Below the pieces are notes generated by a model. It was not told where the DNA came from, ran no database searches, and saw only the letters and a list, made by a program, of their open reading frames with translations. This document shows positions 21,526-41,900 of a stretch of 64,000 nt of DNA, in pieces (within the stretch, counting starts at the first letter, position 1; every line of letters starts with the position of its first letter). Made by a program: the position numbers and the translations under genes. Origin of the DNA: Selaginella moellendorffii (lineage: Eukaryota > Plantae > Lycopodiophyta); the NCBI RefSeq assembly GCF_000143415.4, contig NW_003314267.1:1438100-1502099 (forward strand). The letters run 5' to 3'.

Positions 21526-22751
21526 CTACTTGTCCCACTCTGGATCGATGTCGGACGGAGGCTGGACGAGGCTGCGGGGAGCGGTGGTGCCGGAGACCGA
21601 GGCGCCACTGGCGCCAGCCTCGTCGATCCCGTTCACCTCAGTGGCGTAGTGCCAGCCCATGAGATAAGGGAGAGCGTACTAGAAAAGAGTGTTCCAAGAT
21701 ACTGTTAGTGTTGAGTGGAAGAACAATGGAAGAACAAGCAAGAACTACTTACATTGGCCGCGGAGCGAATGATGGCAAATTCACCCTTTGAGATTGGAAT
21801 GTTGAGTCGTGCCTCGGCTTTCTCCACCTTGTTTGCCACAGCTACAGGCGCGATGGAAATGAGTTCCAGAGAACTGGAAAGAAGGATCTTTCAGTTACTT
21901 ACTTAAACCGAAGAAGAATCCATTCCTGTCCGTGGTGGGTTCGATCTTGAGCGACTTTCTCACCATTCCAGCGTCACTGCCACGGAGCAAGTTCCAAATG
22001 TTTATCAGCAAAACCGAGATCTCTAGCTTTCAGAAGGAGAAAAACAAGAGGAAGTCTTACGATTTTCCCATGTTTGGGTCGTGAAAGAACTCGAGAGATT
22101 CCGACGGGGTCAGTGCAAGGATCTGTCCGAGCTCGCTCACAGAGAGAGCGAAAAGCTGCAAGAACCTCATCAGTGGCTGACACCTGCGAAAGCGGGAACG
22201 AGACTACCTGCTTTTTTCCCCAGTCGTACTGACGCTGAGAGATGGATGGCGCAAACTCCAGCATCACAGTCCCCTCTCGAGAGAGAATCGCGTCTCCAGA
22301 CTAGAGGAAACAAAATAAGAAATCAACTAAGAACAAAGCTTCTCGGATCTTCTTACATCTGATATCTTGAAAGTCGGCTTGATGAGTCGCATGTTGAGCG
22401 CACACTTTCCTTTGTAGAACACATGATCGGCAAAGACTCGCCTTGGTCGGGTTTCTGAAACAAAAGAACCTGCTAACAAGCTGACGGCGAGTGCCGATAG
22501 TTTTTCACCTGTAGCCTCATGGGCTGCCATCGTAGCCATGCTCCGACGAATGGAGACACCACCAAGCTCCAGCTTTGGCATGGAGAACGAAAACACACTT
22601 GGGAGCCTGGATAAAAAAGCGAAGCACTCGTCAGAGGAGAAAATAGAAGAAAAGAGATAAAAGAAACCACGAACTTGGTGTAGCCCAGCACACTTTCCAT
22701 TGTACCGCCGCAGGTGCCGCCCAAAACCTTCGTCCTCGCCACAGCCCACAT
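21526..22751 (-). CDS. Whirly ssDNA-binding protein (WHY2-like, organellar)
   Basis: VFYKGKCAL, LEFAPSISQRQYDWGKKQ|LFALSVSELG, FFHDPNMGKS, LPYLMGW, PEWDK*. Confidence 0.93.
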
Positions 22752-22941
22752 TCCTGCGTTAAAACCCTCAACCCAAAAATCCCTAGCATAAAGAAGTTAG
22801 CAAAACTAACCTGAGCTCAACTATGGAACTTTCAGTGATGGAGCCATATGGCAATCACGTCAACGAGCCGTATCTCACACTGACACATATAAATATCAGT
22901 GACTTCTGTTGTCTTTGACAAGGTTAATTGACTCGGGGAAG

Positions 22942-25900
22942 ATGGAAATGGCGCAAGAACTGCTGGACGGACCGCTGCACGAGATCAAAGAAACCAGTAA
23001 GTATGATTTCCACTTCAACACCCATCAGTGCCAGTACCTGCAAAGCCGATGCTCCGTGGTCGAAGAATACGTGCGGCTTTGGCAGAGCTGCTCCGAGCTT
23101 GAGCCACTTCCCCTGGCCATGGAGGAGCTCCGTTGTATGCTAAGCAGAGCCTTGCAGCTTCTCAAGCAGTGCCAGCACGAGGAATGGCTGTACCATGCTG
23201 CAGTCCGGCTCACTGATTCCAGAGCCTTTGCGGAGATCTGCTGGTGTCTCAGTAGATTGACGGCCTTGGTCAATGCTCACATGATCCATTCTGCCATGGA
23301 TATTAGGAGTCCCAATGTACAGTGCCTCATGGCTATGCCTTACAAGCGCAAGCACATAGAGAACCTGCGTTCGGCAATGGAGGACCTGAGTCCCTGCACA
23401 TCAAGAGATAGAAAGGAGCTCTTCGTGAGAGCAAATTCCATCGGAGAAACTGACGGCAGGTATGGTCTGGCACAGTACCTTGTTGAGAAGCTGCTGTCAA
23501 GCGGAGGAGGAGCACTTCCTACCATTCAGGCCCTCGAACTCAAGACTCTGATAGGTGCGGGGGCATTTGGTTCCGTGTACAAGGCTGAATGGCTGGGGGC
23601 ACCAGTTGCTGTGAAAGAGTTTAGGAGCGGTGATGCTTCATTCGACAAGGAGGTGAACATCCTGAAAGAACTTATTTCAGAACCGCACCCGAGCGTGCTC
23701 CAAATGATAGGATACTATCAGAAGGATGAGAAGGCTTACCTTGTCATGGAGCTGATGGAAAGAGATTTGGCCAACGTTATAAGGAAGACTCAAGGTTCGC
23801 TGCAACTTTTAACTTCTATAGACATCATGCTCCAGATTGCGAGCGGCATGAGCTACCTCCATCAAAAGAATGTGGTTCATCGAGACCTCAAGCCTTCGAA
23901 TATCCTGGTTAAGACACCGAACCATGCCTGCGCCACCTGTTCCAACGTGAGGTTAACAGACTTCGGAGTCTCAAAGTCGAACTTTATAAGCTTTGCACCG
24001 GACTTGTCTTACCAGAGGGGGACGATCCAATACATGGCTCCAGAGATGCTGAGGGGTCAGAAGTACTCCAGAGAAGTTGACGTGTACAGCTTTGGAATTA
24101 CTTGCTTCCAGATCCTGACTGGAACGCTGCCATTTCAGGACGATGGCAAGCAGCTGGTGGCAGATAAACTGGTCGAGACGATCGAAGATGGAAATAGGCC
24201 TGACCTTCCAACAGGCTGTCCACTGGAGCTGGTTGCTCTCCTCAACAGGTGCTGGAACAGGAATCCGAAAGATAGACCAACCTTCGAACACATATCCAGA
24301 ATGCTGTGGTCGCTAAAAGAAAGGTTGCTTGGTGGCCACAACCTCGAATCCAGCTTCACAGGCAGTGAGATGTCCAGTTGCAACGCTGCGGAAGAGCTCA
24401 CACTCGCTGCAGGAGATATGATCTGCCAGATTTCAGTTGCTGCTCCGTTCACAAATTTTCACCAGTGCTACTTCTTGCAGTCGAGGTGCAAGCAGATTTC
24501 CAGCTACCGCGAATTTCCGAATAAGCTGCGCCTTCGTTCATGGTTTGCCGTTCAGATAAAGCTGGTGACTACCTTGAGAACTGCGTTGTCGCTGCTAGAA
24601 TCTTACAGTGAAGAGAGGTGGCTGCATACGGCGGTGCTGAAAGAGCATAACCCGTGGGCGTTCAGAAAAGCTCTTGAAGATATCAACAGATGTGAAACCA
24701 CACTGAGAGCCATAAACCCCGGCAACCACAGCGATAACGTGATGACGTTCCCCGCTGTTCCTGAGCAATATGCGGAAGATGATAAAAAGAGAATGGCGGA
24801 AAGCATCAAAGGCTTACTCGATGCATCGGACGGGGTGACGGTTAAGTTTGCAGAATATTTGGTTCAAAAAGCAGCTTTTGATTCAGTGTTACCATGCATC
24901 GATCCACAGGAAATCGTACTGCTCAATTTCATAGGAATGTCAAACCATGGGACGATATTTGAAGCAAGATGGCTAGACGTACCTGTGATGGTAAAAGCCC
25001 TTGGAACAGGAAATGAAGCTGAAAAGCTCCTGAAGGAGCTTGACAAGCGGCACGCAGAACTTATAAACAGGCCCCATCCAAATGTAGTGCAAGTTATCGG
25101 CTACACAAGGCACGGGGAAAACCTGTTCGTGGTGTCCGAGCGGGTCTCTGGAGGCCACTTCCGAGTGACAAAGTTCCCTCTTGTATTGACCATCGAGATC
25201 CTGCTTCAAGTTGCTCAAGGCGTGGCCTACTTGCATGAACATAACTGCGAGCTCTCGGACTTGAATACGCTGCTGGTGGACTTTGAAAAAGGCCACTTCG
25301 ACGAATTCACCGGTGGCATCACTGTCAAAGTTCACGCACAGTCCAACCTCAGAAAACGAGATGGACCAAATAGCTTGAGTACCTTGGCTGGAAGGTTGAA
25401 GCATCCGTTCCACTTCCCTCACGTGCCAGACGCGGACTGCGGGAAGATCGACGCGTACAAGTTTGGTATAGCCTGCGTAGAAATGATCACCGGACAAACC
25501 ATCGGGGAAGAAATACTGCTCTCTGGAAAACTACCGCAACTGCCTCACGATTGCACGGGAATCAAGGCTGTGATAGAGAAATGCCTGAGCTCGCAGCCTC
25601 CGGGCTTCCATCAAATCGTGGAACTCCTGCAATCAGCTCAACTTAGACTGGAGATTCCGCCTACAAGCGACATAGACTACCGACGGATGCTTCTGGACTC
25701 CAGCGCTCAAACTGGACTCAAGCTCGACATAACGGGAGACGCAGTAATTGGTGGCAAGCTCATTGCTGTTGGAAACGTAGAAAATGTGGGTAACAGGCTC
25801 TACCAGTGGATCCGTCAGCACAAAGATGGAACTATAGAGCGGTTGCGGCCATTTCTCGTGACGGAGTTGGACTCTGGGACACTGGAGTATGATCTAACAG

Positions 25901-26367
25901 CCGACGACTTCAACAAGGCGATCTCACTAACTTACGTGGATATGAACGAAAAGATCGAAGTTTCCGGCAGAGAAACCACGAACAGTCGATGGGTTTCCTA
26001 TAGTGACACTATGAAGCGGGCGCTCAAGATGATATGGGGAGCTGGCGAGGCCAAGTTCAAGGTTTTGCAGCTAAGGGAAGAAGAAGGGAGCAAGCAGAGC
26101 TACCTGGTGATTAGACGGCCGCATTGCATGCTGGAGTGGAAGCGCTACTACTTGAAAAGGATGGAGATCAAGATCGCGTTCACCTCCCCGGCGGCCGGCA
26201 TCAAAATATCCGAGGAGAATCCGCAAATTTGCCAGCTGATCGATAACGGCGGCGCGGAGGCCTGCAAGATCCGATTCAAGAACGCGTTCGAGAGAGACCT
26301 GGCGGTGCTTACCTTCCGGCATTTCTTGCGCGCCTGTGAGAAGGGGAAGCGCTCGCGACGACGATGA
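22942..26367 (+). CDS. Intronless tandem kinase: helical-bundle (DUF1221/MLKL-like) + TKL kinase + helical-bundle + pseudokinase + Ig/PH-like C-terminal domain
   Basis: Kinase 1 is intact (GAGAFG, VAVK, HRDLKPSN, DFG, APE, DVYSFG). Kinase 2 lacks the HRD/DFG consensus. Each kinase is preceded by an NxHQCxxLQSRC..W motif domain. Confidence 0.9.
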   Translation: MEMAQELLDGPLHEIKETSKYDFHFNTHQCQYLQSRCSVVEEYVRLWQSCSELEPLPLAMEELRCMLSRALQLLKQCQHEEWLYHAAVRLTDSRAFAEICWCLSRLTALVNAHMIHSAMDIRSPNVQCLMAMPYKRKHIENLRSAMEDLSPCTSRDRKELFVRANSIGETDGRYGLAQYLVEKLLSSGGGALPTIQALELKTLIGAGAFGSVYKAEWLGAPVAVKEFRSGDASFDKEVNILKELISEPHPSVLQMIGYYQKDEKAYLVMELMERDLANVIRKTQGSLQLLTSIDIMLQIASGMSYLHQKNVVHRDLKPSNILVKTPNHACATCSNVRLTDFGVSKSNFISFAPDLSYQRGTIQYMAPEMLRGQKYSREVDVYSFGITCFQILTGTLPFQDDGKQLVADKLVETIEDGNRPDLPTGCPLELVALLNRCWNRNPKDRPTFEHISRMLWSLKERLLGGHNLESSFTGSEMSSCNAAEELTLAAGDMICQISVAAPFTNFHQCYFLQSRCKQISSYREFPNKLRLRSWFAVQIKLVTTLRTALSLLESYSEERWLHTAVLKEHNPWAFRKALEDINRCETTLRAINPGNHSDNVMTFPAVPEQYAEDDKKRMAESIKGLLDASDGVTVKFAEYLVQKAAFDSVLPCIDPQEIVLLNFIGMSNHGTIFEARWLDVPVMVKALGTGNEAEKLLKELDKRHAELINRPHPNVVQVIGYTRHGENLFVVSERVSGGHFRVTKFPLVLTIEILLQVAQGVAYLHEHNCELSDLNTLLVDFEKGHFDEFTGGITVKVHAQSNLRKRDGPNSLSTLAGRLKHPFHFPHVPDADCGKIDAYKFGIACVEMITGQTIGEEILLSGKLPQLPHDCTGIKAVIEKCLSSQPPGFHQIVELLQSAQLRLEIPPTSDIDYRRMLLDSSAQTGLKLDITGDAVIGGKLIAVGNVENVGNRLYQWIRQHKDGTIERLRPFLVTELDSGTLEYDLTADDFNKAISLTYVDMNEKIEVSGRETTNSRWVSYSDTMKRALKMIWGAGEAKFKVLQLREEEGSKQSYLVIRRPHCMLEWKRYYLKRMEIKIAFTSPAAGIKISEENPQICQLIDNGGAEACKIRFKNAFERDLAVLTFRHFLRACEKGKRSRRR

Positions 26368-26644
26368 CATCCAAAATGCTGTGAGTCAACGGCGCGCGCC
26401 GGTGATTTCTTGCTGGAAATCGAAGTAGAAATGAAGAACCCTATATGTACAAAAGAGAAAGGTGCAAGTTTCGAACCGGCGACTTTTGCTAAAGTGGCAG
26501 GTTTTTCATATTTCCCGCCCTTGGGAAGCTAGTATTTCGTGAGCGAGTTTGTTGGTCTCGGGATCGGGTAGTTTTAGAATTTTTTCTTCGTTGTGGGCAG
26601 CAGAAGACTTAAACGATGGATGCATCCATTAAAAACCATGATGA

Positions 26645-26790
26645 GAAGCTGACGGCAAATTCCGATATTTTTCTACCTGTAGGTTCATGGCCTCCAGTCG
26701 AAACCACCAAGCTCCAGCTTTACCATGGCACATGAAAACGCACCTGGATAAAAAAAAGGAAAACACTCGTTAGGAGAGAAATACCTAGAA
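26645..26790 (-). pseudogene. Degenerate copy of Whirly exon 2 / intron 1
   Basis: aagctgacggc..ccgata..acctgtag..ccaccaagctccagcttt..cctggataaaaaa..cactcgt matches 22478-22645. Confidence 0.75.
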
Positions 26791-29619: not shown

Positions 29620-30083
29620 ACTGATGGCACTCACGTCAGTGAGCCGTATCCCACACTGACACATAAATCTCCGTCACTTCTATTGTCTTGACAAGGTTAA
29701 TTGACTTGGTGAAGATGGAAATGGTGCAAGAACTGTTGGACGGACCGCTGCATGAGATCAAAGAAACCAGTAAGTAGGATTTCCACTTCAACACCCATCA
29801 GTGCCAGTACCTGCAAAGCCGATGCTCCATGGTTGAAGAATATGTGCGGCTTTGGCAGAGCTGCTCTGAGCTTGACCCACTTCCCCTGGCCATGGAGGAG
29901 CTCCATTGTATGCTGAACAGAGCCTTGCAGCTTCTCAAGCAGTGCCAGCATGAGAAATGGCTGTACCATGCTGCAGTCCGGCTCACTGATTCCAGAGCCT
30001 TTGTGGAGATTTGCTTGTGTCTGAGTAGATTAATGGCCTTGGTCAATGCTCACATGATTCATTGTGCCACAGATATTAGGAGT
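29620..30083 (+). pseudogene. Truncated duplicate of the 5' end of the tandem-kinase gene
   Basis: Near-identical to 22846-23310, with TAT->TAG stop at about 29776; truncated by LTR sequence at 30084. Confidence 0.9.
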
Positions 30084-30702: not shown

Positions 30703-33176
30703 AAGCTCTATTTCGTTAAAGTGGGATTTATTCAGTAAAATGGGACTAGGTACAAATTTTCAAGTATTTGAAAATGACGTGAAATTATATGTTTTTTGTC
30801 CAGGGGCTAGACATATCTGGGGCATGGTGACTAGCGCGGTGACTTTGTGTCCAGAATGAGTCCATCTGGTTGTATAATAAATCTCATTGTCAAGGTGAAC
30901 AAGCCGAATCTGAAGCTAAAGAAGAGCGATGGCATGCGCGCACACACTATTTGTTTGTTCATTGAGCGTGTGGTGAGCTTTCCAAGATGAACGTCATTCC
31001 TATTAGCCAGACATATAACTTAATGGTGAGAACATTTAGATATTATTCAATGTTATCTTTTTCTAATGAATCTAATTGTGAAGGTGTAGCAAGAGGCATT
31101 GCTAGTCTGGAGAAGTCATTTAACTCATTTGACCCTTAGTGTATTTTCATGAAACTAAATAACATTCATATTATTAAGGAATTTCTCTAGTACCTTTTTT
31201 TTACGACATAGAGGCTTGCATTTCTTTCAAAGGTGATATAGTAAAAGGCCTGAGGGCACATGCCATTCTATTTCTCAGACCGGTATTAAGATATACTAGT
31301 GCAAAGGGCCACATGCCATCACGCCTCCTCTGATTCAGATTCGGATTGTTCACCTTGAAATAAAATACATTAGAAACTTAGTAAAGGAATATTAATGAAT
31401 CTCACCTTGAACCCGGGTTATGAATGCTCTTGCTGCATCTCTTGCATGGTCTGGCAAGGTGATGGTGGCACTTTGCTTCCGCATCCAACCATGCACAACA
31501 TTATCCACCGATATGCTCATGCTGGGATCCCTTGGATTCAGCACCCATCTCTTTTCTAGGCAATCCTTCGTATATCCGGAACTTGGCTTGAACCACTCCA
31601 CAGTTACATTGAAGGAGTTAGTTTCCGCGTCCTCCTCTGCATCAGTGATGCAGCGCCCCACCCATATCATTTGTTTTTTATTACTGGGTCTGACAAGCAC
31701 GACCATTCCTTTGCAGACCTGTACTGGATTGAATGCTGAATCCGGCTTCTTGTTCCTCGGCCCACAATAGTGATTCTCAACATCGTTATCTGTCACTGCA
31801 TTTCTAGAGGACATTGTTCTGCTACTATCTGGTGCTCTGGGTTTTGGCCAAAAGGACTCTTCCAATTCTTCATATACAACCGGCCCATTTTGGATAGTAG
31901 ATATAATCTTCTCCCAGTATTCGAGCAAAGGCTTGCACCTCTTAAAATAGGATTCTCCACCAAACACCAACCCCCTCTTCTAGAAGGCAATATGCTGTCT
32001 AATCCCGGCCACTATACTTTCCTGGTCTTTGAGTCCATCCGGGTGCATCAGCCGTGGGGAACCCTGAGGAATCATAGGTTCCCCAGTTATGGGATGTCTC
32101 TTGAAGAGTTCAATGCCATCCACTGGCAGCCACACTGTGTCCCATTCTCTCATCTTGTACCTCATCACTGGAGCACCGTCACGCATGCTGAAATGAAACT
32201 GAAGAGGCTTGGAGTGGCCAATCAGCGTTTCGGATCCGTCCCTGATGTAGCCTCTTACAAACCCCTTAAAGTCTGGAACCTCTGTCACAAGTGCAGCTTC
32301 AACAGTGCCTTTGATGCAATTTTGGAATTCATTGTAGAGTTGTGGGAGGGTGAGGACATTGGATCGCCGGAGGGACTCTGCCAGGTGACTGAACATGGCA
32401 TCGACGTCTTCATGAGTGTGCCCAACCATGAGAAAGCCAAGTGTAACCGTTTCAAATATGCCTTTGGCAACAAGCATCGCCAAGTACGCAAAGACGTACA
32501 TGTTTTTGTTCTCACTGCCAGCATTGTCTGTTTGGAGCAGAAGATGGGGTGGAAGGCCACATCGGCCGCAAGAACTTCCTTGAGATTCTGCTTCGTTTGG
32601 ATGAGGCTGTGCATTCACCGGGCGACCAGCCTCGTCGGAATGGCATGAGGCCTCACGTGATAACCCTACAATCTGACGGCCAACATATTCACTGGGATGG
32701 CATGGGGCCCCACGCGATACTGCAAGCCTTTGCTCCTCCTCCAGCTGAACCCTGTATGGGGTTCGATCGACAAGGGCCTTATGCAAGGGTTGGCCGTTCA
32801 GCTCAGTCTGCGCACTTTGCAGAGACCTTAAGTGTTTTGCTAGGGACGCAATCATCATGTTTGCACCCCCGCCACCCCATAGAGGTACAAAGAAGTTCCC
32901 ATAGTTCTGGGCACCATGCCCATGAGCGATTATGCCAAACAGAGACACAGGCAGCTGCATGGATGAAGAGATTGCCTTGGGGGCAGGATTGAGTCGAGGT
33001 AAGCACGTCTTTTTCTGGTCCATTTTGTCGTGGATGATGCAGAGGTAAGAGTCAGGTCTCTCCATGGAGAGAATCCTGTTATGATAATATGCAGTCCTGC
33101 AGCTTCTCTGCTCGATGTTGTGGTCGAGCCGCCTTCTAACCAACATCTCTCGCTCTTGAGCGCTGCAGTCAACAAC
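30703..33176 (-). mobile_element. Sola-like TIR DNA transposon, 3' half (TIR at 30703-30726)
   Basis: TIR AAGCTCTATTTCGTTAAAGTGGGA preceded by TSD AAGA; contains the transposase C-half. Confidence 0.8.
31392..33176 (-). pseudogene. DDE transposase C-terminal half (GHTHEDxD family), one premature stop at about 31980
   Basis: IIHDKMDQKKT, LLLQTDNAGSENKN, FLMVGHTHEDVDAMFS; C-terminal SH3/Tudor-like beta domain. Confidence 0.85.
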
Positions 33177-36100
33177 TTGGAGGTCTAGAAGACCAAGTAC
33201 CTCTTGGCAACTCTGTTAAGGTGCCAAGGTGAGATCACTAGGTGATCTTATGGCCAGATAAGGACAAGGTCCTTGGTTGGCTAAGGAATGAAGTCCCTGG
33301 TTCAAAATGTTGAAATTGAACTGTTTAAGATGGTGTGGCTTGGTCGTGATGACCAAGTGGGAAGAGCACCTAAGGGAAATAAACTATGTCTGTCCGATGG
33401 CATAGTGAGTCTGAGGAAAGTAGTCTCTATAAAAAACCCATGGGAGGGTCACGAAGTTGGGCCATGGATAGAGCCCATAGCAGAATATGCTAAAGAGACA
33501 TACTAGGGGTGAACATCCTCCGGACTTGGCAAAGAAGAGTCTTTGCTATGGAACCAAAAGTATACCTCAAAAATGGAGGTAGTGATCCGATGTTGCTGAG
33601 TGCAACAATCAAGGATAGGAGCAAAGGACTAGTGGCCAAAGTTTGGGCCATGGAATTTTATGGAAGGGATCCAAATGGCAAAGTTAGCCAAGGAACACTA
33701 ATGTGTTCGATGCTAACAGCTTGTGGGAAAGGAAGCGGACTTTCAAGGATGGATTCCTAAGTGCTCCAATTTGGCGAAGTAAAGGCTCCAAGTGAGGGAG
33801 CGGTAAGGTAGCCAAATGATAGGGCCATGGACAGCCCTAGCACAAAGTATGATAAATGGAACTTAGTGCCCAAGGTGGCACGAAATAGAAGAGAGGATGA
33901 TGGTGCCCTCAAGTAATGAACTTCCTAGGATAGGGAAGTGGAGTTGCACAATCTGTGCAATGCAAGGTGTTGGAGACACCTAGGAAATTGACTTCCAAAA
34001 AGTCAAAAGAGTAAAAGTTCCAAGGTGCAAACATTCAATAGATGGAAATTGAGACTACTCGAGAAGGAGTAGTGGGATTGACTTAGAGAAGGGTCTCTAA
34101 GAGGTTTAGCGAGAACTAAACCAATAAAAGGAGAGAACCATTACATGTGGTCCAATCAGTCTCTAAGTTGGAGAGACTACGCTCCTTAAAGGATGGACAA
34201 GGCATGGTGAGCCTTTGGTGTCAAACCATAGACAAAGATTGGCTAAGTGCTAAGGATGGAAATGGTAACACGTGTGGGTGTTACTTTATGAAAGGGTTTA
34301 CCGTTCGATGAGGACATCGAACTTCGTCTATGGGTGGTGGAGTTGTGAGACACAAAATCCCTAGGCCCCAAAGTGGAGCCGGAAAGGGTGCCACATGGTA
34401 GTGGCTGAAGCGAGAGCCAAACGAGCGTAACACGTTTGGACCAAAAGCTCCGACTTGAAAAGTCAAGAGCGGGAGTGGAACTCCCAAAGAAGTGCTCGAG
34501 GAACGAGCACGAAGCGAGCAAAAAGCGAGGCTCCAAAAAGGGACCCAAAAGGACCAACACATGACACGTGGGAGAGTCCGAGATGGAGTCCGAAGTGGAG
34601 TCCGAGGTGGACCCGAGATGGACCCGAGATGGAGTCCGAAGCGGAGTCCGAGGTGGACCCGAGATGGACCCGAGTTGGAGTCCGAAGTGGAGTCCGAGAT
34701 GGACTCGAGTTGGAGTCCGAAGTGGAGTCCGAGATGGACCCGAGTTGGAGTCCGAAGTGGAGTCCGAGATGGACCCGAGTTGAAGTCCGAAGTGGAGTCC
34801 GAGATGGACCCGAGATGGAGTCCGAGATGGAGTCCGAAGTGGAGTCCGAGGTGGACCCGAGATGGACCCGAGATGGAGTCCGAAGTGGAGTCCGAGGTGG
34901 ACCCGAGATGGACCCGAGTTGGAGTCCGAAGTGGAGTCCGAGATGGACCCGAGATGGAGTCCGAGATGGAGTCCAAGATGGAGTCCGAGGTGGACCCGAG
35001 ATGGACCCAAAATAGAGTCCGAGATGGAGTCCGAGATGGAGCCCGAGATGGACCCGAGATGGACCCGAGATGGAGTCCGAGATGGAGTCCGAGATGGAGT
35101 CCGAGATGGAGTCCGAAGTCGAGACCGAGACCGGGACCGAGACCGAGACCGAGACCGAGATCGGGACCGAGACCGAGACCGAGGCCGAGGCCGTGACCGA
35201 GCCCGAGTCCGAGTCCGAATCCGAGTCCGAGTCCGAGTCCGAGTCCGAGTCCGAGTCCGAGTTCGGAGCCTGAGAGGGTGAAAGCCCAAAGCGTTCGTCT
35301 CCCAGACCCTGGGGGGTTTGGTGAGCTCCAAAAGTATAGTAAGGGGGAGGACTGCAGTGGAGCCAGTTTGGCCAGGAAAGGCCAGTTTGGCCCAGGAAGG
35401 CCAGACCCAGTGTTGGGTGATGAACTGACCACTGGGAAGTCCAAGACTAGAGTGAATACGGACCGACAAGCGGGGTAGCTTGGTGAAGTGTTCAAGAGCC
35501 GGCTCTAGTTCCCCCGGGAGATCGACTGGCCGATGCTCCCAATCCAAGTGTGGGTGGCACTACCTACTTGGATACCAGACGTGGCTCAACGGAACCTCGC
35601 TCTAAGCCCATGGCTAGAGCACCTAAAGGCGAAAGGCGGGGAGAGTACCCAGGTGGCTCGCGTAAGGCCACGGTGTTCCGAAATGTTGCCCCAAAGGCCT
35701 AGACTGTGGAAAGGAAGAGGAGCAGTCCTCTGGGGTAGTGACCAAGGACATAGTCGTGTGGTGAGGAAGTCCCAGAGGACCATGGGACTTAGTGGTCGGG
35801 CCTGTGGGCCTCGATCCAGTGGCAGTGTTGGCAAACACGGCCAGGGGCAGAAAGGCACTTGGTAGGAACTGACAAAGGGACTTTGGGGAAGGCGATTCCC
35901 CAGGTCTGTGGGCATCCTAAGGATGCTAAGGAGTGGATCTAGGATGACCACTCATGGACAGATGGCCCAGTCTTGGAGAGACGGGATGGTGATGCAAGTG
36001 GTATTGGACCACTAGTGCAGCAAAGGTGAATGGGCATGGCCTTAGCGTAACGGGCCGAGATGTCAATGGTACCTTTAGGTGTCGGTCTTGGGACCGGACA

Positions 36101-36269
36101 CGTGGAGCACTTGGACCAGGTGCAAGTGTTGAGTGGCATCGATGCCATTCTTGGGGCTAGCAAGTCCCAAGTCCTGAATTTAATTGATGGAGGTTGTGAA
36201 TGAGACTCCTCCAAGTGGTCAGAGGTGTGGTTAAGTGACTAAAGTAAAATGGAAAATTTAGTCGCTTAG
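33177..36269 (+). mobile_element. Non-autonomous LTR element family A: internal 3' part + 3' LTR (about 34264-36269)
   Basis: The LTR end at 36180-36269 is the reverse complement of the PBS-adjacent LTR at 63739+. No intact ORFs. Confidence 0.7.
34572..35266. repeat. Minisatellite of CCGAGATGGAGT / CCGAGATGGAC units grading into (GAGACC)n and (GAGTCC)n
   Basis: About 700 bp of 10-12-bp and 6-bp units. Confidence 0.95.
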
Positions 36270-37360
36270 AAAATGATCTACGTATTTGATCCTCCATCCC
36301 CGATGGCTCTCTTTTCAGTCTCATCTTTGACCAAACCTCAAGCTTGCTTTCGCATTGCCTTCAGTTCAATCGAAGAAAAGTTTATGAGAGAGCACGGCAA
36401 TGATTACTTGAACCAATAGACTATTCCCTACAGTCTTGATTGATCCACTTATAATCATGCCTAGGAAGGATCCACTAGTGCCATGCTAAACAGCTACGGA
36501 CCAGCCTATTTGCCACTCATAACAAACCCAGGGAAAGTTTATTTGCACCCATGGTACATGGAACAACTCATGGAACCACCGATAGGCTAACATTAATCCT
36601 GCCAACTCAAAGTGTAACCTCGAGTTGCTAATGTGCCTCACTCACGAGCCCAAGCGCAAACTCATGTAACGGAACAACTCAGTCCACCTTATTGTAAGCA
36701 ACCAAAGGGAACGACTCGAGAGACGATCCGTTGGGGTTCAAATATAGAGGGAAAGGGCCCATGAATAAGAGTGCACCCCCTTTTCCAATCGGTTAAGGGT
36801 CTTGGGATATTTGGAGTTAAGCGTCCTTGGGTTTGAATAGTACTGGGCTGGGTGACCTCCCGGGAAGTCCAAACTCAGGAGTTTACACCTATGAGCCCAA
36901 GAGCAAGCTCATATAATATAGAACAAAAAGGTAACCAAAACCTATCCCAAAGAACCAATGCGAAGTCTTTGCACCAAAACGTATACCCACTCAGATCATC
37001 GTTTTCATCTCTGTGTATGCAACGAGACTAGTTTCCCAATGAGACTAGTTGCCCAATCTCATTGGATAGTTCTCGCCGAGACTCTACCTCTGATACCAAA
37101 TGTAGCACACGTGGTTTTGACCCTTTATCCTATGGTGATTTACCATAGGATAACACCACGAAGCGGAACCTAAACCCTCTTTGTGCCACGTGACAGATGC
37201 CACGTGTCACATGCCACGTGTCCATAGGAACCCGAGGTTTAGGGCCTTGGGCCACTGAACGAAGGAACGGTGCCAAACTCCCAAGCATGGAGCCAAGGAG
37301 TGATGGAACCGGACCACGGAGCAACTCCCGAGCATACAGCCCAAGGAGCGAAGGGACAGT
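36270..37360 (-). mobile_element. LTR family C 5' LTR part + PBS + internal start
   Basis: tRNA-iMet PBS (TGGTATCAGAG on the minus strand, 37088-37098) next to LTR end at 37101; inverted homolog of about 39250-40135. Confidence 0.7.
36693..36887 (+). mobile_element. Cassandra-like solo LTR carrying a 5S rRNA internal promoter segment
   Basis: TGTAAG...TTTACA, 195 bp, 5-bp TSD cttat/cctat, absent from the homologous site at about 39710. 36815-36870 matches the 3' half of plant 5S rRNA. Confidence 0.8.
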
Positions 37361-37924
37361 CCTCTGGGGTAGTGACCAAGGACATAGTCGTGTGGTGAGG
37401 AAGTCCCAGAGGACCATGGGACTTAGTGGTCGGGCCTGTGGGCCTCGATCCAGTGGCAGTGTTGGCAAACACGGCCAGGGGCAGAAAGGCACTTGGTAGG
37501 AACTGACAAAGGGACTTTGGGGAAGGCGATTCCCCAGGTCTGTGGGCATCCTAAGGATGTGAAGGAGTGGATCTAGGATGACCACTCATGGACAGATGGC
37601 CCAGTCTTGGAGAGACGGGATGGTGATGCAAGTGGTATTGGACCACTAGTGCAGCAAAGGTGAACGAGAGCCCCCCCCCCCCCCCCTTGAGGAACACACG
37701 CTTTGGGCTTAGCCTCCCTTAGTATCAGGAGTTAGTCTCTGGGACAAGCTCGAAACTTACTAAATATGGAATGTCCTTAGAATGCGAATTTGGACACAGG
37801 ACGAACATTATTGTGTTCAGGCTGATCTCTACATTCCGTAGATATGCCAAATGAGCAAATCTAAACACTTTCCATAAATAGCATTTGGGACCGAAATGAA
37901 ACTAACACAAAGGGCATGATAGCG

Positions 37925-38684
37925 AGGGTGTTTGGCAGACACGGTAAGCTGTCATCTAGCGATATTGAGGGACCAAGCTCAATATCGCGGGGGTTCCAAA
38001 CACTAGCAAGTGCAAGCCAACATCATGAGTTTCTCATCACCGTGTCAAGTCTGCTTGACTAAATGACAACTTAGGATTTCCTTCCTTAGTGCCCTTCCGG
38101 TTTAAGTGCACATGTGATGACCAGTTTCTCAACTAGCTTAGGCAGAGATTGATAATGAGCCCAGCAATACCAACCTCCTGCCATCGTGGCAGTAAGAAAG
38201 AATATCCGAAAGGACTAGCCGACAGGTAACTTTCGATACTTGAAGTCACATTCGCGACAATGACAAAGTAGCAACCTCCTCCTTTTTTGACTTTGAAGCA
38301 AAAATTAATGTAGTTACTTGATGCTATATGGTTGTAATTGAGCAATTTGTCATAAATGTGACTTTGAGTATCGAAAGTTACCTGTCGACTAGTCTTTACA
38401 GACATTCTTTCCTTACTGCCATGATGGCAGGAGGTTGGCATTGTTAGATCCTTTATCAGTCTCCACCTAAGCTAGTTGAGAAACTGGTTAGCACATGTGC
38501 ACTTAGACCAGAAGGGCACTAAGGAAGGAAATCCTAAATTGTCATTTAGTCAAGCAAACTTGATATAGTGATGAGAAAACTCATGATATTAACTTGCACT
38601 TGCTAGTGTTGGGAACCCCCGCGATATTGAGCTTGGTCCCTCAATATCGCTAGATGACAGCTTACGGTGTCTGCCAAACACCCT
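37925..38684. mobile_element. Foldback / Tourist-like MITE with ~340-bp inverted arms
   Basis: AGGGTGTTTGGCAGACAC... and ...GTGTCTGCCAAACACCCT, with long complementary arms and a loop of about 85 bp. Confidence 0.75.
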
Positions 38685-38939
38685 NNNNNNNNNNNNNNNN
38701 NNNNNNNNNNNNNNNNNNNNNNNNNNNNNNNNNNNNNNNNNNNNNNNNNNNNNNNNNNNNNNNNNNNNNNNNNNNNNNNNNNNNNNNNNNNNNNNNNNNN
38801 NNNNNNNNNNNNNNNNNNNNNNNNNNNNNNNNNNNNNNNNNNNNNNNNNNNNNNNNNNNNNNNNNNNNNNNNNNNNNNNNNNNNNNNNNNNNNNNNNNNN
38901 NNNNNNNNNNNNNNNNNNNNNNNNNNNNNNNNNNNNNNN
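38685..38939. other. Assembly gap
   Basis: Run of N. Confidence 1.
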
Positions 38940-41900
38940 TAAAAGCCCAAAGTGTGTGTCCTCGAGGGGGGCGGGGGGGGGGGGGGTTAAGGGGGGTTTC
39001 AAATGTATATGTAGGGATAATGGGTAGGTCAGGCATGGCTGACCAACCTGAGGCATAGTTTAACTCTTACTTGCATGTCTATCCTTGTTCTACGTCCGGC
39101 TTGGGTCTAAACCCAAGTTCCATATCATACTAGTTGGTGGAGTACCCATATCCTTGCGTTAGGCTATTGGTATGCTGAAATAGTGCTAAACTCCGTTTGG
39201 CTCCGTTTTGCGTGTTGGTTTTGGCATTAGGATGTTGGATGCTCTATGCTCTTGTCCCTTCGCTCCTCAGGCTTTATGCTCGAGAATTGTTCTATGTCCC
39301 AATGCCATTGCTCCTTGGCTCTATACTTAGGAGTTTGGCACTGTTCCTTCATTTATCGCCCCAAGCCCTGAAACTTGGGTTCCACACCATTGTCCTTTGG
39401 ACATGTGGCATATGTCATGTGGCATAAGACACGTGGCACATGGTGGGTTAGGTTCTGCTTCATGGTTATCCTATGGTAAATCACCATAGGATAAAGGGTA
39501 AAAACCACGTGCACTATATTTGGTATCAAAGAGTGAGTCTTAGCAAATACTATCCAATGAAATTGGGCCACTAATCTTGTTGCATATGTAGAGATAAAAA
39601 TGATGATCCAAGTGGTTACATGTTTGGGTGCAAAGGCTTTTTATTTATTCATTGGGTATGGATTTTGGTTACTTTTTTGTACTATATTATGTGAGCTTGC
39701 TCTTGGGCTCATAAGATGGACTGAGTGAGGCACATTAGCACGAGTTTGCACTTGGGCTCGGGAGTGTGGCACATTAGCAACTCAAGGTTATGCTTTGAGT
39801 TGGCAGGATTAATGTTAGCCCATTAATGGTTCCATGAGTTGTTTCTTGTACCCTGGGTAAAAGTAAACCTCCCTTGGGTTTGCTATGAGTGGCAAATAGG
39901 CTAGTGTATAGCTGTTTAGCACGGCACTAGTGGATCCTTCTTAGGCATGATTATAAGTGAACCAATCAAGATTATAGGGATTAGTCCATTGGTTTAAGTA
40001 ATCATTGCCATGCTCTCTCATAAACTTTTCTTAGATTAGACTGAATGCAGTGCAAACACAAGCTTGAGGTTTAGTTAAAGATGAGACTGAAAAGAAAGTT
40101 ATCAGGGACAAAGGATCAAACACGTAAATCATTTTCTCTTCTTGGAGAGATGATTTGCAACGAGGTGTTAACTCATTGCTCATATTCACATCATGCAATC
40201 AAGAGTCCCTACCTTGATGCATATTAGAAGTGATGATCTTACAAGTGGTGAATCATGGGATGGATAGCGATGAAGCGCTAAACTATTTTGTTTAGGCTTG
40301 CCATTAAAAGACTTGGGTTACAATGCTCAAATCTTTTCCAAGGAACCTTGTTATTGCTCATTGAGTAGCTTGGTGTTGGATTAATTTTGAGTTTGGTCAG
40401 AAAGAGAGTGGCATGAGCTTGTCTATGTTATGAACAAAAATTAATGGTGTTGAGTGTTGTAAATTTCTATTGGTGGGGTGTCACATTTATGTTGCATTTT
40501 ATCAAATCGAGTTATGATACTCATATAAACTTTATAGTAGTGACATAAGCATTATTCATAGTGTTGCTCGATCGATGATCAAGTTATTGTGATTTTTTTA
40601 TCATATTCATGTGATAGTGAGCAATGTATTTACGAAGTTGCTTAGTTAAACAATGATCAACCCCAAAGTGGGTGATAGTGAAGCTAATCTACTTTATATA
40701 GTAGCATTTAAGTAGCTTTGACTAAGTTCTCAATGGTGATTCATTATGCTAAGCTTGAGTTAGTACATTGTTTCCTTGAGTTTGCCTATAAGGTGTTGGA
40801 AAAAGTTGTAGCATTCATTTATTATAGCTTGTCGATTAATCCATTAGCATTTAGAGTAGATTGTTGGATGGAGAAGATGTGTAGTTGAGGCATTAACATC
40901 ACTAGTACTTGTATTAGTGGAAGTGGTATTGTTATTTTGAGTGATGAGGGATTTTCCTTAGACCTTGATATGTCATTTTTCTTATTAGTGTTTTGGCTTC
41001 ACGTTGGATCTTGAAAGTGGTTGAAGAAGAGTGTTAGTGCAATGTGGATATCCGAAGATGTGGTCTTCGTGATCAAGCCTTAGATGTTCAATTTGCATTT
41101 TGCGGATGTCGGTGTTAGATGTTGGAAAATGAGCAAAGATGTTCGATGCTTAACATGCTGCTGGGTCATAAAAATTTGTGTTGAGGTGAACCTATGTAAA
41201 GTTGTAAGTAGGAGGAAGTTGGTTGAGTTTTGAAAGTTTGCATTCCTATACTGAGAGTCATTCTTTCTTTAGGATGGAAAATTTCCACAAATTTTCTCTG
41301 ACTTTTCCAATGGCTGATTTGTTGATTATTTTGCTTGAAAACCTTTCAGTTTTCTTAAGCTAGTATAAACTAGTGAAAGGGTTGGAGTTGATTTCAGTTA
41401 GCTTAGATCTTAGTAAATAGTTTGTATAATGCAGCTCAAAAGGGATGCTGACTTTTGAGGTTAAAAGCAATTGAGTTGGATAGAGTCTGGAGTTGGTGTA
41501 GAAAAGTGGCCATTACACTTTTCTAGAAAGGTGGCCCTTATGCCTTTCTTTATAGTATTTTGCTTAGTGGCAACTTGCACTTTGCATTTCATTAAACTCT
41601 ATAAGAGTAGTGAGCTCTCACTGATCTTGACTTAGTCTTGGTAGTTTTGTGCCTTGGTTGAGGATGGTGATATCCAACTTAGTTGTTTGAGGTTGAGATG
41701 TTGGTGCCCATACTATAGCTTTGTTTATGAGGAGGTTGTGTACCAATATGAGTCCATCTCATAGTCTTCACTTTAATTTTGACTAAGTGTTGATTATGCA
41801 TAACTAGCCTCTTCAAGGCATGTTTAGAGCTATTGACTAAACGTGTTGGTGAGTTTATTGTGGTAGAGTTAGATTTGAGTGGTTATTTAGTTTATGCTTG

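Follow-up and report, generated by a model that had tools for sequence, protein, structure and literature searches.

A doubled MLKL-like gene with one intact and one degenerate kinase in the lycophyte Selaginella moellendorffii

Plant MLKLs, which are reported to be conserved as a family throughout the seed plants, join a HeLo or four-helix bundle (4HB) domain that carries the cell-death activity to a pseudokinase, which together with a brace buries the HeLo domain in a tetramer, and to a serine-rich tail; two of the Arabidopsis proteins (AtMLKLs) associate with microtubules (10.1101/681015). In wheat, Pm13 is an MLKL-type resistance gene whose kinase is putatively functional (PMC10951266, PMC11297308), and MLKL-K proteins have been reported in Poaceae only (PMC11297308). 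The wheat MLKL R3AK causes cell death via its 4HB, perturbation of its kinase active site makes it auto-active, and wheat MLKL-type proteins pair with NLRs (10.64898/2026.08.07.743466). The tandem kinase proteins form a polyphyletic group, more than half of whose predicted members come from duplication (PMC8761531). A survey of NLRs listed MLKL-class proteins, undescribed, in all tested plant lineages (PMC11218826), and in the literature on MLKL in Selaginella or bryophytes we found no description of a doubled MLKL unit. Here we analyze a gene of the lycophyte Selaginella moellendorffii, located at 22942-26367 on the + strand of a 64,000-nucleotide stretch of genomic DNA (the window), which we identify with high confidence as a doubled MLKL-type gene.

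Architecture of the gene and its described counterparts

The gene is an uninterrupted open reading frame (ORF) of 1141 codons plus a stop, whose frame is open from an upstream TTG at 22909, with the first ATG at 22942 and the stop codon at 26365-26367. Its translation is identical, letter for letter, to a database protein (labeled P0001 here). The protein consists of a helical domain and a kinase, the same pair a second time, and then a C-terminal tail of 236 residues. Residues 1-480 and residues 481-1141 align in one collinear match of 447 residues (26% identity, E 4e-31), which spans the helical domain and the kinase from an N-x-HQC-x-[YF]-LQSRC motif (residues 26-37 in unit 1 and 505-516 in unit 2) to the end of each kinase. 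This bears out the proposal, made in an earlier note from the DNA sequence, of an internally duplicated unit of helical domain and kinase, and the nearest protein relatives likewise agree with its placing of the DNA in a non-seed-plant genome, that of a lycophyte. The C-terminal domain and the multi-copy status of the gene were absent from that note. The only Pfam matches above threshold on the full protein are two protein-kinase stretches, and the full layout (bundle, kinase, bundle, dead kinase, tail) is shared by only three database proteins. The domains, referred to below by the names given here, are as follows.

22942-26367, + strand: complete intronless ORF of the doubled MLKL-like kinase (P0001), from the reading frame, unspliced RNA-type contigs and substitution rates
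22942-23526, + strand: N1 (residues 1-195), MLKL-type four-helix bundle with brace helices, as supported by profile and predicted fold
23527-24336, + strand: K1 (residues 196-465), kinase with all catalytic motifs, from Pfam and a motif table
24382-24906, + strand: N2 (residues 481-655), putative second, shortened MLKL-type helical domain with brace, from sequence comparison
24907-25656, + strand: K2 (residues 656-905), pseudokinase, from the internal alignment and the motif table
25657-26364, + strand: C domain (residues 906-1141), conserved tail in which residues 927-1003 resemble an AIR9-type Ig domain

Compared with AtMLKL1-3, which consist of DUF1221 and a pseudokinase (6KA4, 6LBA), the Selaginella gene has the unit twice, its first kinase is intact, a folded-looking domain of 236 residues takes the place of the serine-rich tail, the bundles fall below the DUF1221 model, and the host is a lycophyte and not a seed plant. 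Like the animal RIPK3/MLKL pair, it combines a live kinase with a bundle-bearing dead kinase; unlike that pair, it has both in a single chain and a bundle on the live kinase as well, while K1 appears to be a duplicate of an MLKL-like kinase and not a RIPK homolog, with no evidence of a RHIM motif. Wheat Pm13/MLKL-K and R3AK resemble it in joining an MLKL-type bundle to an active-looking kinase, and for the wheat proteins an immune role has been demonstrated. Those proteins, however, are single-unit and grass-restricted (PMC11297308), some of them with an NLR partner; the phylogenetically remote Selaginella gene differs from them in its doubling, in having a second kinase that is dead, and in its tail.

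The definition of a tandem kinase protein, two kinase folds in one chain of which at least one is a pseudokinase, describes K1 and K2, and the gene resembles the cereal members (RPG1, WTK1-4, RWT4) in holding kinase and pseudokinase in one chain as a product of duplication (PMC8761531). To judge from the sequences, this likeness is one of architecture and not of descent, because the Selaginella kinases look MLKL/MLK-type. The cereal tandem kinases come from receptor-like-kinase lineages, and a whole MLKL unit is not what duplicated there. Some of them carry other integrated domains, such as HMA; to our knowledge, none has a 4HB before each kinase.

The helical domains, the kinases and the tail

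N2 is 28-29% identical to N1, and 38 columns are invariant across the six N1 and N2 sequences of the three Selaginella copies. A profile of these six sequences was searched exhaustively against 1.84 billion representatives, and its only matches outside were P0121, a protein of the moss Ceratodon purpureus (E 6e-6), and P0122, from a metagenome (E 2e-4). Since the first bundle of P0122 passes the Pfam MLKL_N model (30.9 bits against a cut-off of 27), P0122 and P0121 serve as intermediates that place N1 and N2, by profile, in the MLKL superfamily. Direct searches gave less. PDB sequence searches with N1 alone or N2 alone returned nothing meaningful, and a word-based homolog search scoring N1 alone, over proteins within a set length range, returned no match. 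When the six-sequence alignment was compared by hhalign with single sequences, an Ilex DUF1221 protein gave no signal and the Sphagnum protein P0043 gave a weak one (E 2.7e-4), which indicated that deeper profiles were needed.

An alignment of 25 N-terminal domains from Selaginella, mosses, one fern and the alga Klebsormidium shows the common motifs N-x-x-QC-x-x-L, EL-x-x-x-L-x-RA, C-S-x-x-x-WL-x-x-A and AF-x-E, together with the conserved brace motifs D-x-x-x-L and LA-x-YLL-x-K. Taken singly against Pfam, members of this set match DUF1221 (six), MLKL_N (six), DUF7792 (four) and RPW8 (one). Against all PDB sequences, the 25-sequence profile has MLKL as its eight best rows, led by human MLKL (6lk5, E 7e-4) and AtMLKL2 (6lba, E 2e-3), with human and mouse MLKL making up the other six; MotA, at E 1.6, is the only further row. 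The MLKL rows keep the register from the QC-x-x-L motif in helix 2 onward, the brace included. As a control for circularity, an alignment was made without Selaginella sequences and including the canonical Ilex DUF1221 protein. N1 alone matches it with 97% hhalign probability (E 7.8e-11, 151 columns) and the three N2 sequences match it with 78% (E 1.9e-5, 109 columns), the profile of the non-Selaginella domains reaching N2 at residues 505-589.

The AlphaFold2 model of N1, based on the 25-sequence alignment, has a predicted local distance difference test value (pLDDT) of 83 and a predicted template modeling score of 0.81. In a Foldseek search of this model against 350,542 chains, AtMLKL2 and AtMLKL3 ranked first (probabilities 0.96 and 0.99), and human MLKL executioner domains came next, amid unrelated low-probability rows. 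The model superposes on the human MLKL executioner domain at 2.6 Å over 143 residues. Helices 124-186 of the model lie between the bundle and K1, the superposition of residues 1-195 on AtMLKL2 includes this brace, and the kinase fold starts directly after it, at residue 196. The fold comparison on which the earlier note had staked its reading in advance has for N1 yielded a four-helix bundle with MLKL ranked top. Membership of the MLKL/DUF1221 four-helix-bundle superfamily is supported for N1 by profile and modeled fold; for N2 it is supported by sequence alone, so that the note's claim of duplicated MLKL/DUF1221-like helical domains holds at the level of fold for the first of the two.

The kinase domains were compared, motif by motif, in an alignment of K1 and K2 with 17 related kinase domains. 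K1, which matches Pkinase and PK_Tyr_Ser-Thr in Pfam at E 1e-64 to 1e-66, has GAGAFG, VAVK (K225), the alpha-C Glu, HRDLKPSN (313-320, with HRD at 313-315), DFG (340-342) and APE (366-368), as well as the alpha-F Asp and the alpha-H/I Arg, and as the earlier note had said it is predicted to be catalytically intact. Of these features K2 retains three: the beta-3 Lys (K685), the alpha-C Glu and the alpha-F Asp. Its glycine loop is replaced by GMSNHGT, HRD is lost, the catalytic loop reads LSDLN (771-775) with a deletion of two residues that takes out the catalytic Asn, four residues are deleted at the DFG site, and APE has become FPH. The degeneracy noted earlier (LSDLN and no DFG) is confirmed and extends to the glycine loop, the catalytic Asn and APE; the degenerate motifs are identical across all three intact gene copies. 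A dead kinase is typical of animal and Arabidopsis MLKL, a pattern that K2 fits and K1 does not; it is not universal in the superfamily, the wheat MLKL-K proteins being another exception (PMC11297308). In PDB sequences the best matches of K1 are an EGFR-named entry, 9p9u, and then AtMLKL (6ka4 and 6lba), followed by MLK1, TAK1, MLK4, Src-family kinases and B-Raf, a ranking that suits a kinase of the MLK/MLKL type. Most of the non-seed-plant relatives with an MLKL-like N domain retain HRD and DFG in the motif alignment, and the canonical angiosperm MLKL of Ilex has HGDLNPSN and GFG. A prediction of K1 and K2 as a complex gave a score of 0.00 with its controls not run, and counts neither way for a contact between the two.

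Among these relatives P0122 (1129 residues, encoded at L002 1070-4459 on an ENA metagenome contig) has the same order as the Selaginella gene, with bundles at 15-97 and 558-648 and kinases at 217-506 and 767-1048. In contrast to Selaginella K2, both of its kinases keep DFG, the second having HCD for HRD, and they are mutually closest (support 97/80), so its duplication appears to have been a separate event. The protein P0013 of the fern Adiantum has DUF1221 and two kinases. P0121 (M758_5G145700 of C. purpureus) has a divergent MLKL-like bundle, a live-looking kinase and four C1 domains of the diacylglycerol/phorbol type, and is another undescribed fusion of the bundle-kinase unit. Ceratodon P0004-P0011 are likewise MLKL-like, with two or more kinases or a doubled unit. 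The Selaginella tail was not found in P0122, in Ceratodon P0004-P0011 or in Adiantum P0013.

For the tail, the best Pfam lead is the A9 Ig-like domain of AIR9 (PF23197), which residues 927-1003 match at E 2.7e-5 with 24.4 bits, below the cut-off of 27.5. The language-model look-alikes of the tail in the Atlas are IG_AIR9 clusters with a feature score of 0.84, below the level that counts, and residues 1005-1141 had no usable match in the Atlas. An AlphaFold model built from three near-identical sequences was unusable (pLDDT about 32). Against PDB sequences the tail had no match, either alone or as a profile with the tail of P0014, a single-unit Selaginella kinase, and a word-based search with the tail alone, over proteins within a set length range, found no relatives. 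Compared directly by hhalign, however, the tail matches the C-terminal 216 residues of P0014 at E 3.7e-4, and at the sequence level we consider the two tails homologous.

These domains could also belong to an ordinary signaling kinase, or one associated with the cytoskeleton or with membranes, in which the bundles autoinhibit or oligomerize, the tail localizes the protein, and death and immunity play no part. Intact HRD and DFG in most non-seed-plant relatives, with extra domains as varied as the C1 domains of P0121, make the bundle-kinase unit look like a general building block; the AIR9 lead for the tail, though below cut-off, points the same way, as does the finding that two AtMLKLs lie on microtubules and that their immunity is separable from death (10.1101/681015). 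On the other hand, the experimentally studied bundle-kinase proteins that we found (animal MLKL, the AtMLKLs, Pm13 and R3AK) all act in death or immunity, and flux in copy number together with a full layout restricted to three database proteins would be unusual for a housekeeping kinase. We regard this explanation as unlikely.

Copies, selection and transcription

The nearest relatives of the protein are both from S. moellendorffii: LOC112344816 is 92% identical, and SELMODRAFT_422394, whose alignment takes in 65% of the query, is 91% identical there. Scaffold GL377571.1 carries copy B of the gene, and GL377621.1 carries copy C. The SELMODRAFT_422394 model of copy C (1028 residues) is mis-spliced; its locus on GL377621.1 (L003 6001-9426) is open for 1141 codons, and the gap that the model shows in the middle of its first kinase is an artifact of annotation. 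There are accordingly three intact full-length copies of 1141-1142 codons with 5-7% DNA divergence, and one broken fragment, after whose codon 123 the sequence is unrelated.

29624-30083, + strand: broken partial copy, 90-92% identical, of about 90 bp of leader and codons 1-123, in which codon 21 is a stop

The three loci share a gene-sized stretch of homology set in otherwise unrelated flanks. It starts about 95-125 bp before the ATG; in copy C it extends no further than the stop codon, and in copy B it runs about 110 bp past the stop and, more weakly, to about 26630. The shared block corresponds to 22848-26476 of the window, 5906-9541 of L001 and 5905-9430 of L003, and its gene size suggests that the intronless gene was copied as a unit. 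A poly(A) tract or target-site signature, as a retrocopy might leave, was not seen at the copy ends.

Two further observations concern the surroundings of these copies. Blocks of 85-96% identity, some of them inverted, are shared between 35414-41207 of the window and the flanks of the paralogs (L001 480-3992 and L003 1-1773), and are probably dispersed repeats. An ORF of 388 residues at 31983-33146 (- strand), about 2 kb beyond the gene fragment, matches DUF7869 at E 1e-43 and is probably part of a transposon.

The earlier note had called for a survey of paralogs and of the ratio of nonsynonymous to synonymous substitution rates (dN/dS). Between pairs of the three intact copies the ratio is 0.34-0.38 over the whole gene, and all three are clearly under purifying selection. 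By domain it is 0.18-0.23 in K1, 0.20-0.43 in the tail, 0.23-0.40 in N2, 0.42-0.55 in N1 and 0.55-0.66 in K2, the highest of any domain. Such a pattern is relevant to the possibility that the protein is a sensor of the tandem-kinase type, in which the dead unit 2 (K2, perhaps with N2) would be a bait or decoy for effectors and K1 would signal to a separate helper, an NLR or another Selaginella MLKL-like protein, with the bundles serving to regulate or oligomerize and not to kill. The kinase-pseudokinase layout is that of the cereal proteins (PMC8761531), K2 is the fastest-evolving domain, as a bait would be, the multi-copy gene with a decayed fragment nearby is reminiscent of fast-turnover immune families, and NLR partners are known for wheat MLKL-type proteins (10.64898/2026.08.07.743466). 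The ratio for K2 is nevertheless still below 1, on small counts (15-34 changes), both bundles are conserved (0.23-0.55), which argues for a role of their own, and the kinases are of the MLKL/MLK type and not of the receptor-like-kinase lineages of the cereal proteins. A sensor of this kind seems to us improbable.

The history of the doubling was approached through 36 related kinase domains in a maximum-likelihood tree, where K1 and P0014 group together (support 88/83). Since tail and K1 are both closest to P0014, the ancestor would have been P0014-like, with one bundle, one kinase and the tail, and duplication would have added a second bundle-kinase unit within it. Among the relatives fetched, the BLAST matches of N2 are N1 domains only. 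In P0122, in P0009 and in P0010 the tandem kinases of one protein are sister to each other, and the doubling thus appears to have been repeated in different lineages.

Twenty public runs contain the stretch, their type having been guessed as RNA, and four were examined for introns; these four are RNA assemblies to judge by the minus-strand neighbor of the gene, which shows seven short GT..AG introns in them. The contigs cover 22943-26760 without any intron or GT..AG joint on the + strand, consistent with the earlier description of the gene as intronless. Several long contig pieces match this copy exactly (for example 466 and 368 bases with 0 mismatches) and, as the paralogs are about 7% different, the region of this copy must be transcribed. 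Adapter-tagged fragment ends occur at 22943 and 26412. Six introns of the opposite strand lie inside the ORF.

22975-23037, 23393-23477, 23661-23738, 25322-25382, 25626-26102 and 26261-26311, - strand: six GT..AG introns

All six joints have CT..AC ends on the + strand and together they span 22975-26311; each is present in two to three of the four runs, mostly below the unspliced depth. On the question of expression raised in the earlier note, the region is transcribed as unspliced contigs identical to this copy, the strand not being given by the contigs, and sense transcription of the doubled kinase gene is likely.

The gene could instead be a non-functional or selfish copy in decay, carried by a transposon or retrocopied, with all of the RNA an antisense transcript of the minus-strand neighbor. 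The gene-sized block shared by the three loci, the broken fragment and transposase-like ORF a few kb downstream, and the antisense splicing inside the ORF would all fit. Neutral decay, however, should bring dN/dS to about 1 and introduce stops, as in the fragment, whereas three independent copies have stayed open for their full length at 5-7% divergence with a whole-gene ratio of 0.34-0.38 that falls to 0.18 in the catalytic kinase, and their ends lack the poly(A) tail or target-site signature of a retrocopy. We consider decay very improbable.

The neighbor itself is a well-expressed minus-strand gene at 21800-22810, head-to-head with the kinase gene; its introns, of which there are at least seven, are very short (52-84 nt). 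A contig of 2080 nt links it to 22808-23085, overlapping the kinase start. A Whirly-type identity had been suspected from one ORF piece; Pfam gave no match, and the name was dropped.

Proposed mechanism and significance

Based on the architecture and the comparisons presented above, we put forward a hypothetical mechanism for the doubled gene. We propose that a single-unit, P0014-like ancestor (bundle, kinase and tail) underwent an internal duplication of the whole MLKL-type unit, giving rise to a protein with a bundle, brace and live kinase, a bundle, brace and dead kinase, and the tail, and that this protein would be a self-contained, phosphorylation-gated, MLKL-like switch. Specifically, each bundle would be kept shut by its own brace and kinase-like domain, as in MLKL and the AtMLKLs. 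The live K1 would provide a phosphorylation that activates or regulates, either in cis or from one molecule to another, and so play the part of RIPK3 toward MLKL, while the dead K2 would act as a latch or as a signal-perceiving surface. The freed bundles would oligomerize and act on membranes, leading to cell death or defense, and the tail, possibly an Ig-like targeting module, would position the protein in the cell. In a more specific form, a single-chain "necrosome," K1 would phosphorylate the dead-kinase latch of unit 2 and free one or both bundles to permeabilize membranes; we regard this form as doubtful. The general mechanism, a gated system of cell death or defense argued by analogy with the described proteins, is a tentative proposal that we hold somewhat short of even confidence, and for the explanation as a whole, identity and mechanism blended, we see the balance as even.

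Several observations weigh against this reading. On the side of identity, the Pfam models MLKL_N (PF22215) and DUF1221 (PF06760) have no match to either helical domain at an E value of 1 or below, and the sole match of 4HB type on them is DUF7792 at E 0.02. The match of N2 to the non-Selaginella alignment covers mainly helices 3-4 and the brace, as far as the sequences tell, and the N1 model was built on an alignment with recognized MLKL_N and DUF1221 members and leans on them. The free tree gives K2 a very long branch (2.6 changes per site) and no reliable position, and does not group it with K1, although an approximately unbiased test does not reject K1 and K2 as one clade (p 0.25). On the side of expression, spliced antisense RNA crosses the ORF, apparently continuing into the minus-strand neighbor, and the contigs carry no strand information for unspliced RNA. 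On the side of function, an immune or cell-death role is ascribed to the doubled gene by analogy, and the immunity conferred by AtMLKLs is separable from cell death, so that a 4HB does not by itself amount to killing (10.1101/681015).

The essence of our findings is that live kinases occur in MLKL-type bundle-kinase proteins of a lycophyte, in a family previously known as seed-plant pseudokinases, with live-kinase forms in grasses only. Live-kinase MLKLs are thereby extended far outside the grasses, and doubling of the complete MLKL unit has produced a tandem of one live and one dead kinase with a lineage-specific tail. Bundles this divergent are overlooked by Pfam-based surveys, and the public model of the paralog SELMODRAFT_422394 is wrongly spliced. 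If the bundles kill or signal, the gene would join tandem kinase-pseudokinase receptors and MLKL executioners, two separate themes of plant immunity, and would be a natural fusion in which to ask how a kinase opens the MLKL latch. If the single-chain "necrosome" were true, the gene would offer a compact system for MLKL activation without a separate RIPK, and kinase-gated cell death through a 4HB would already have been elaborated in early vascular plants.

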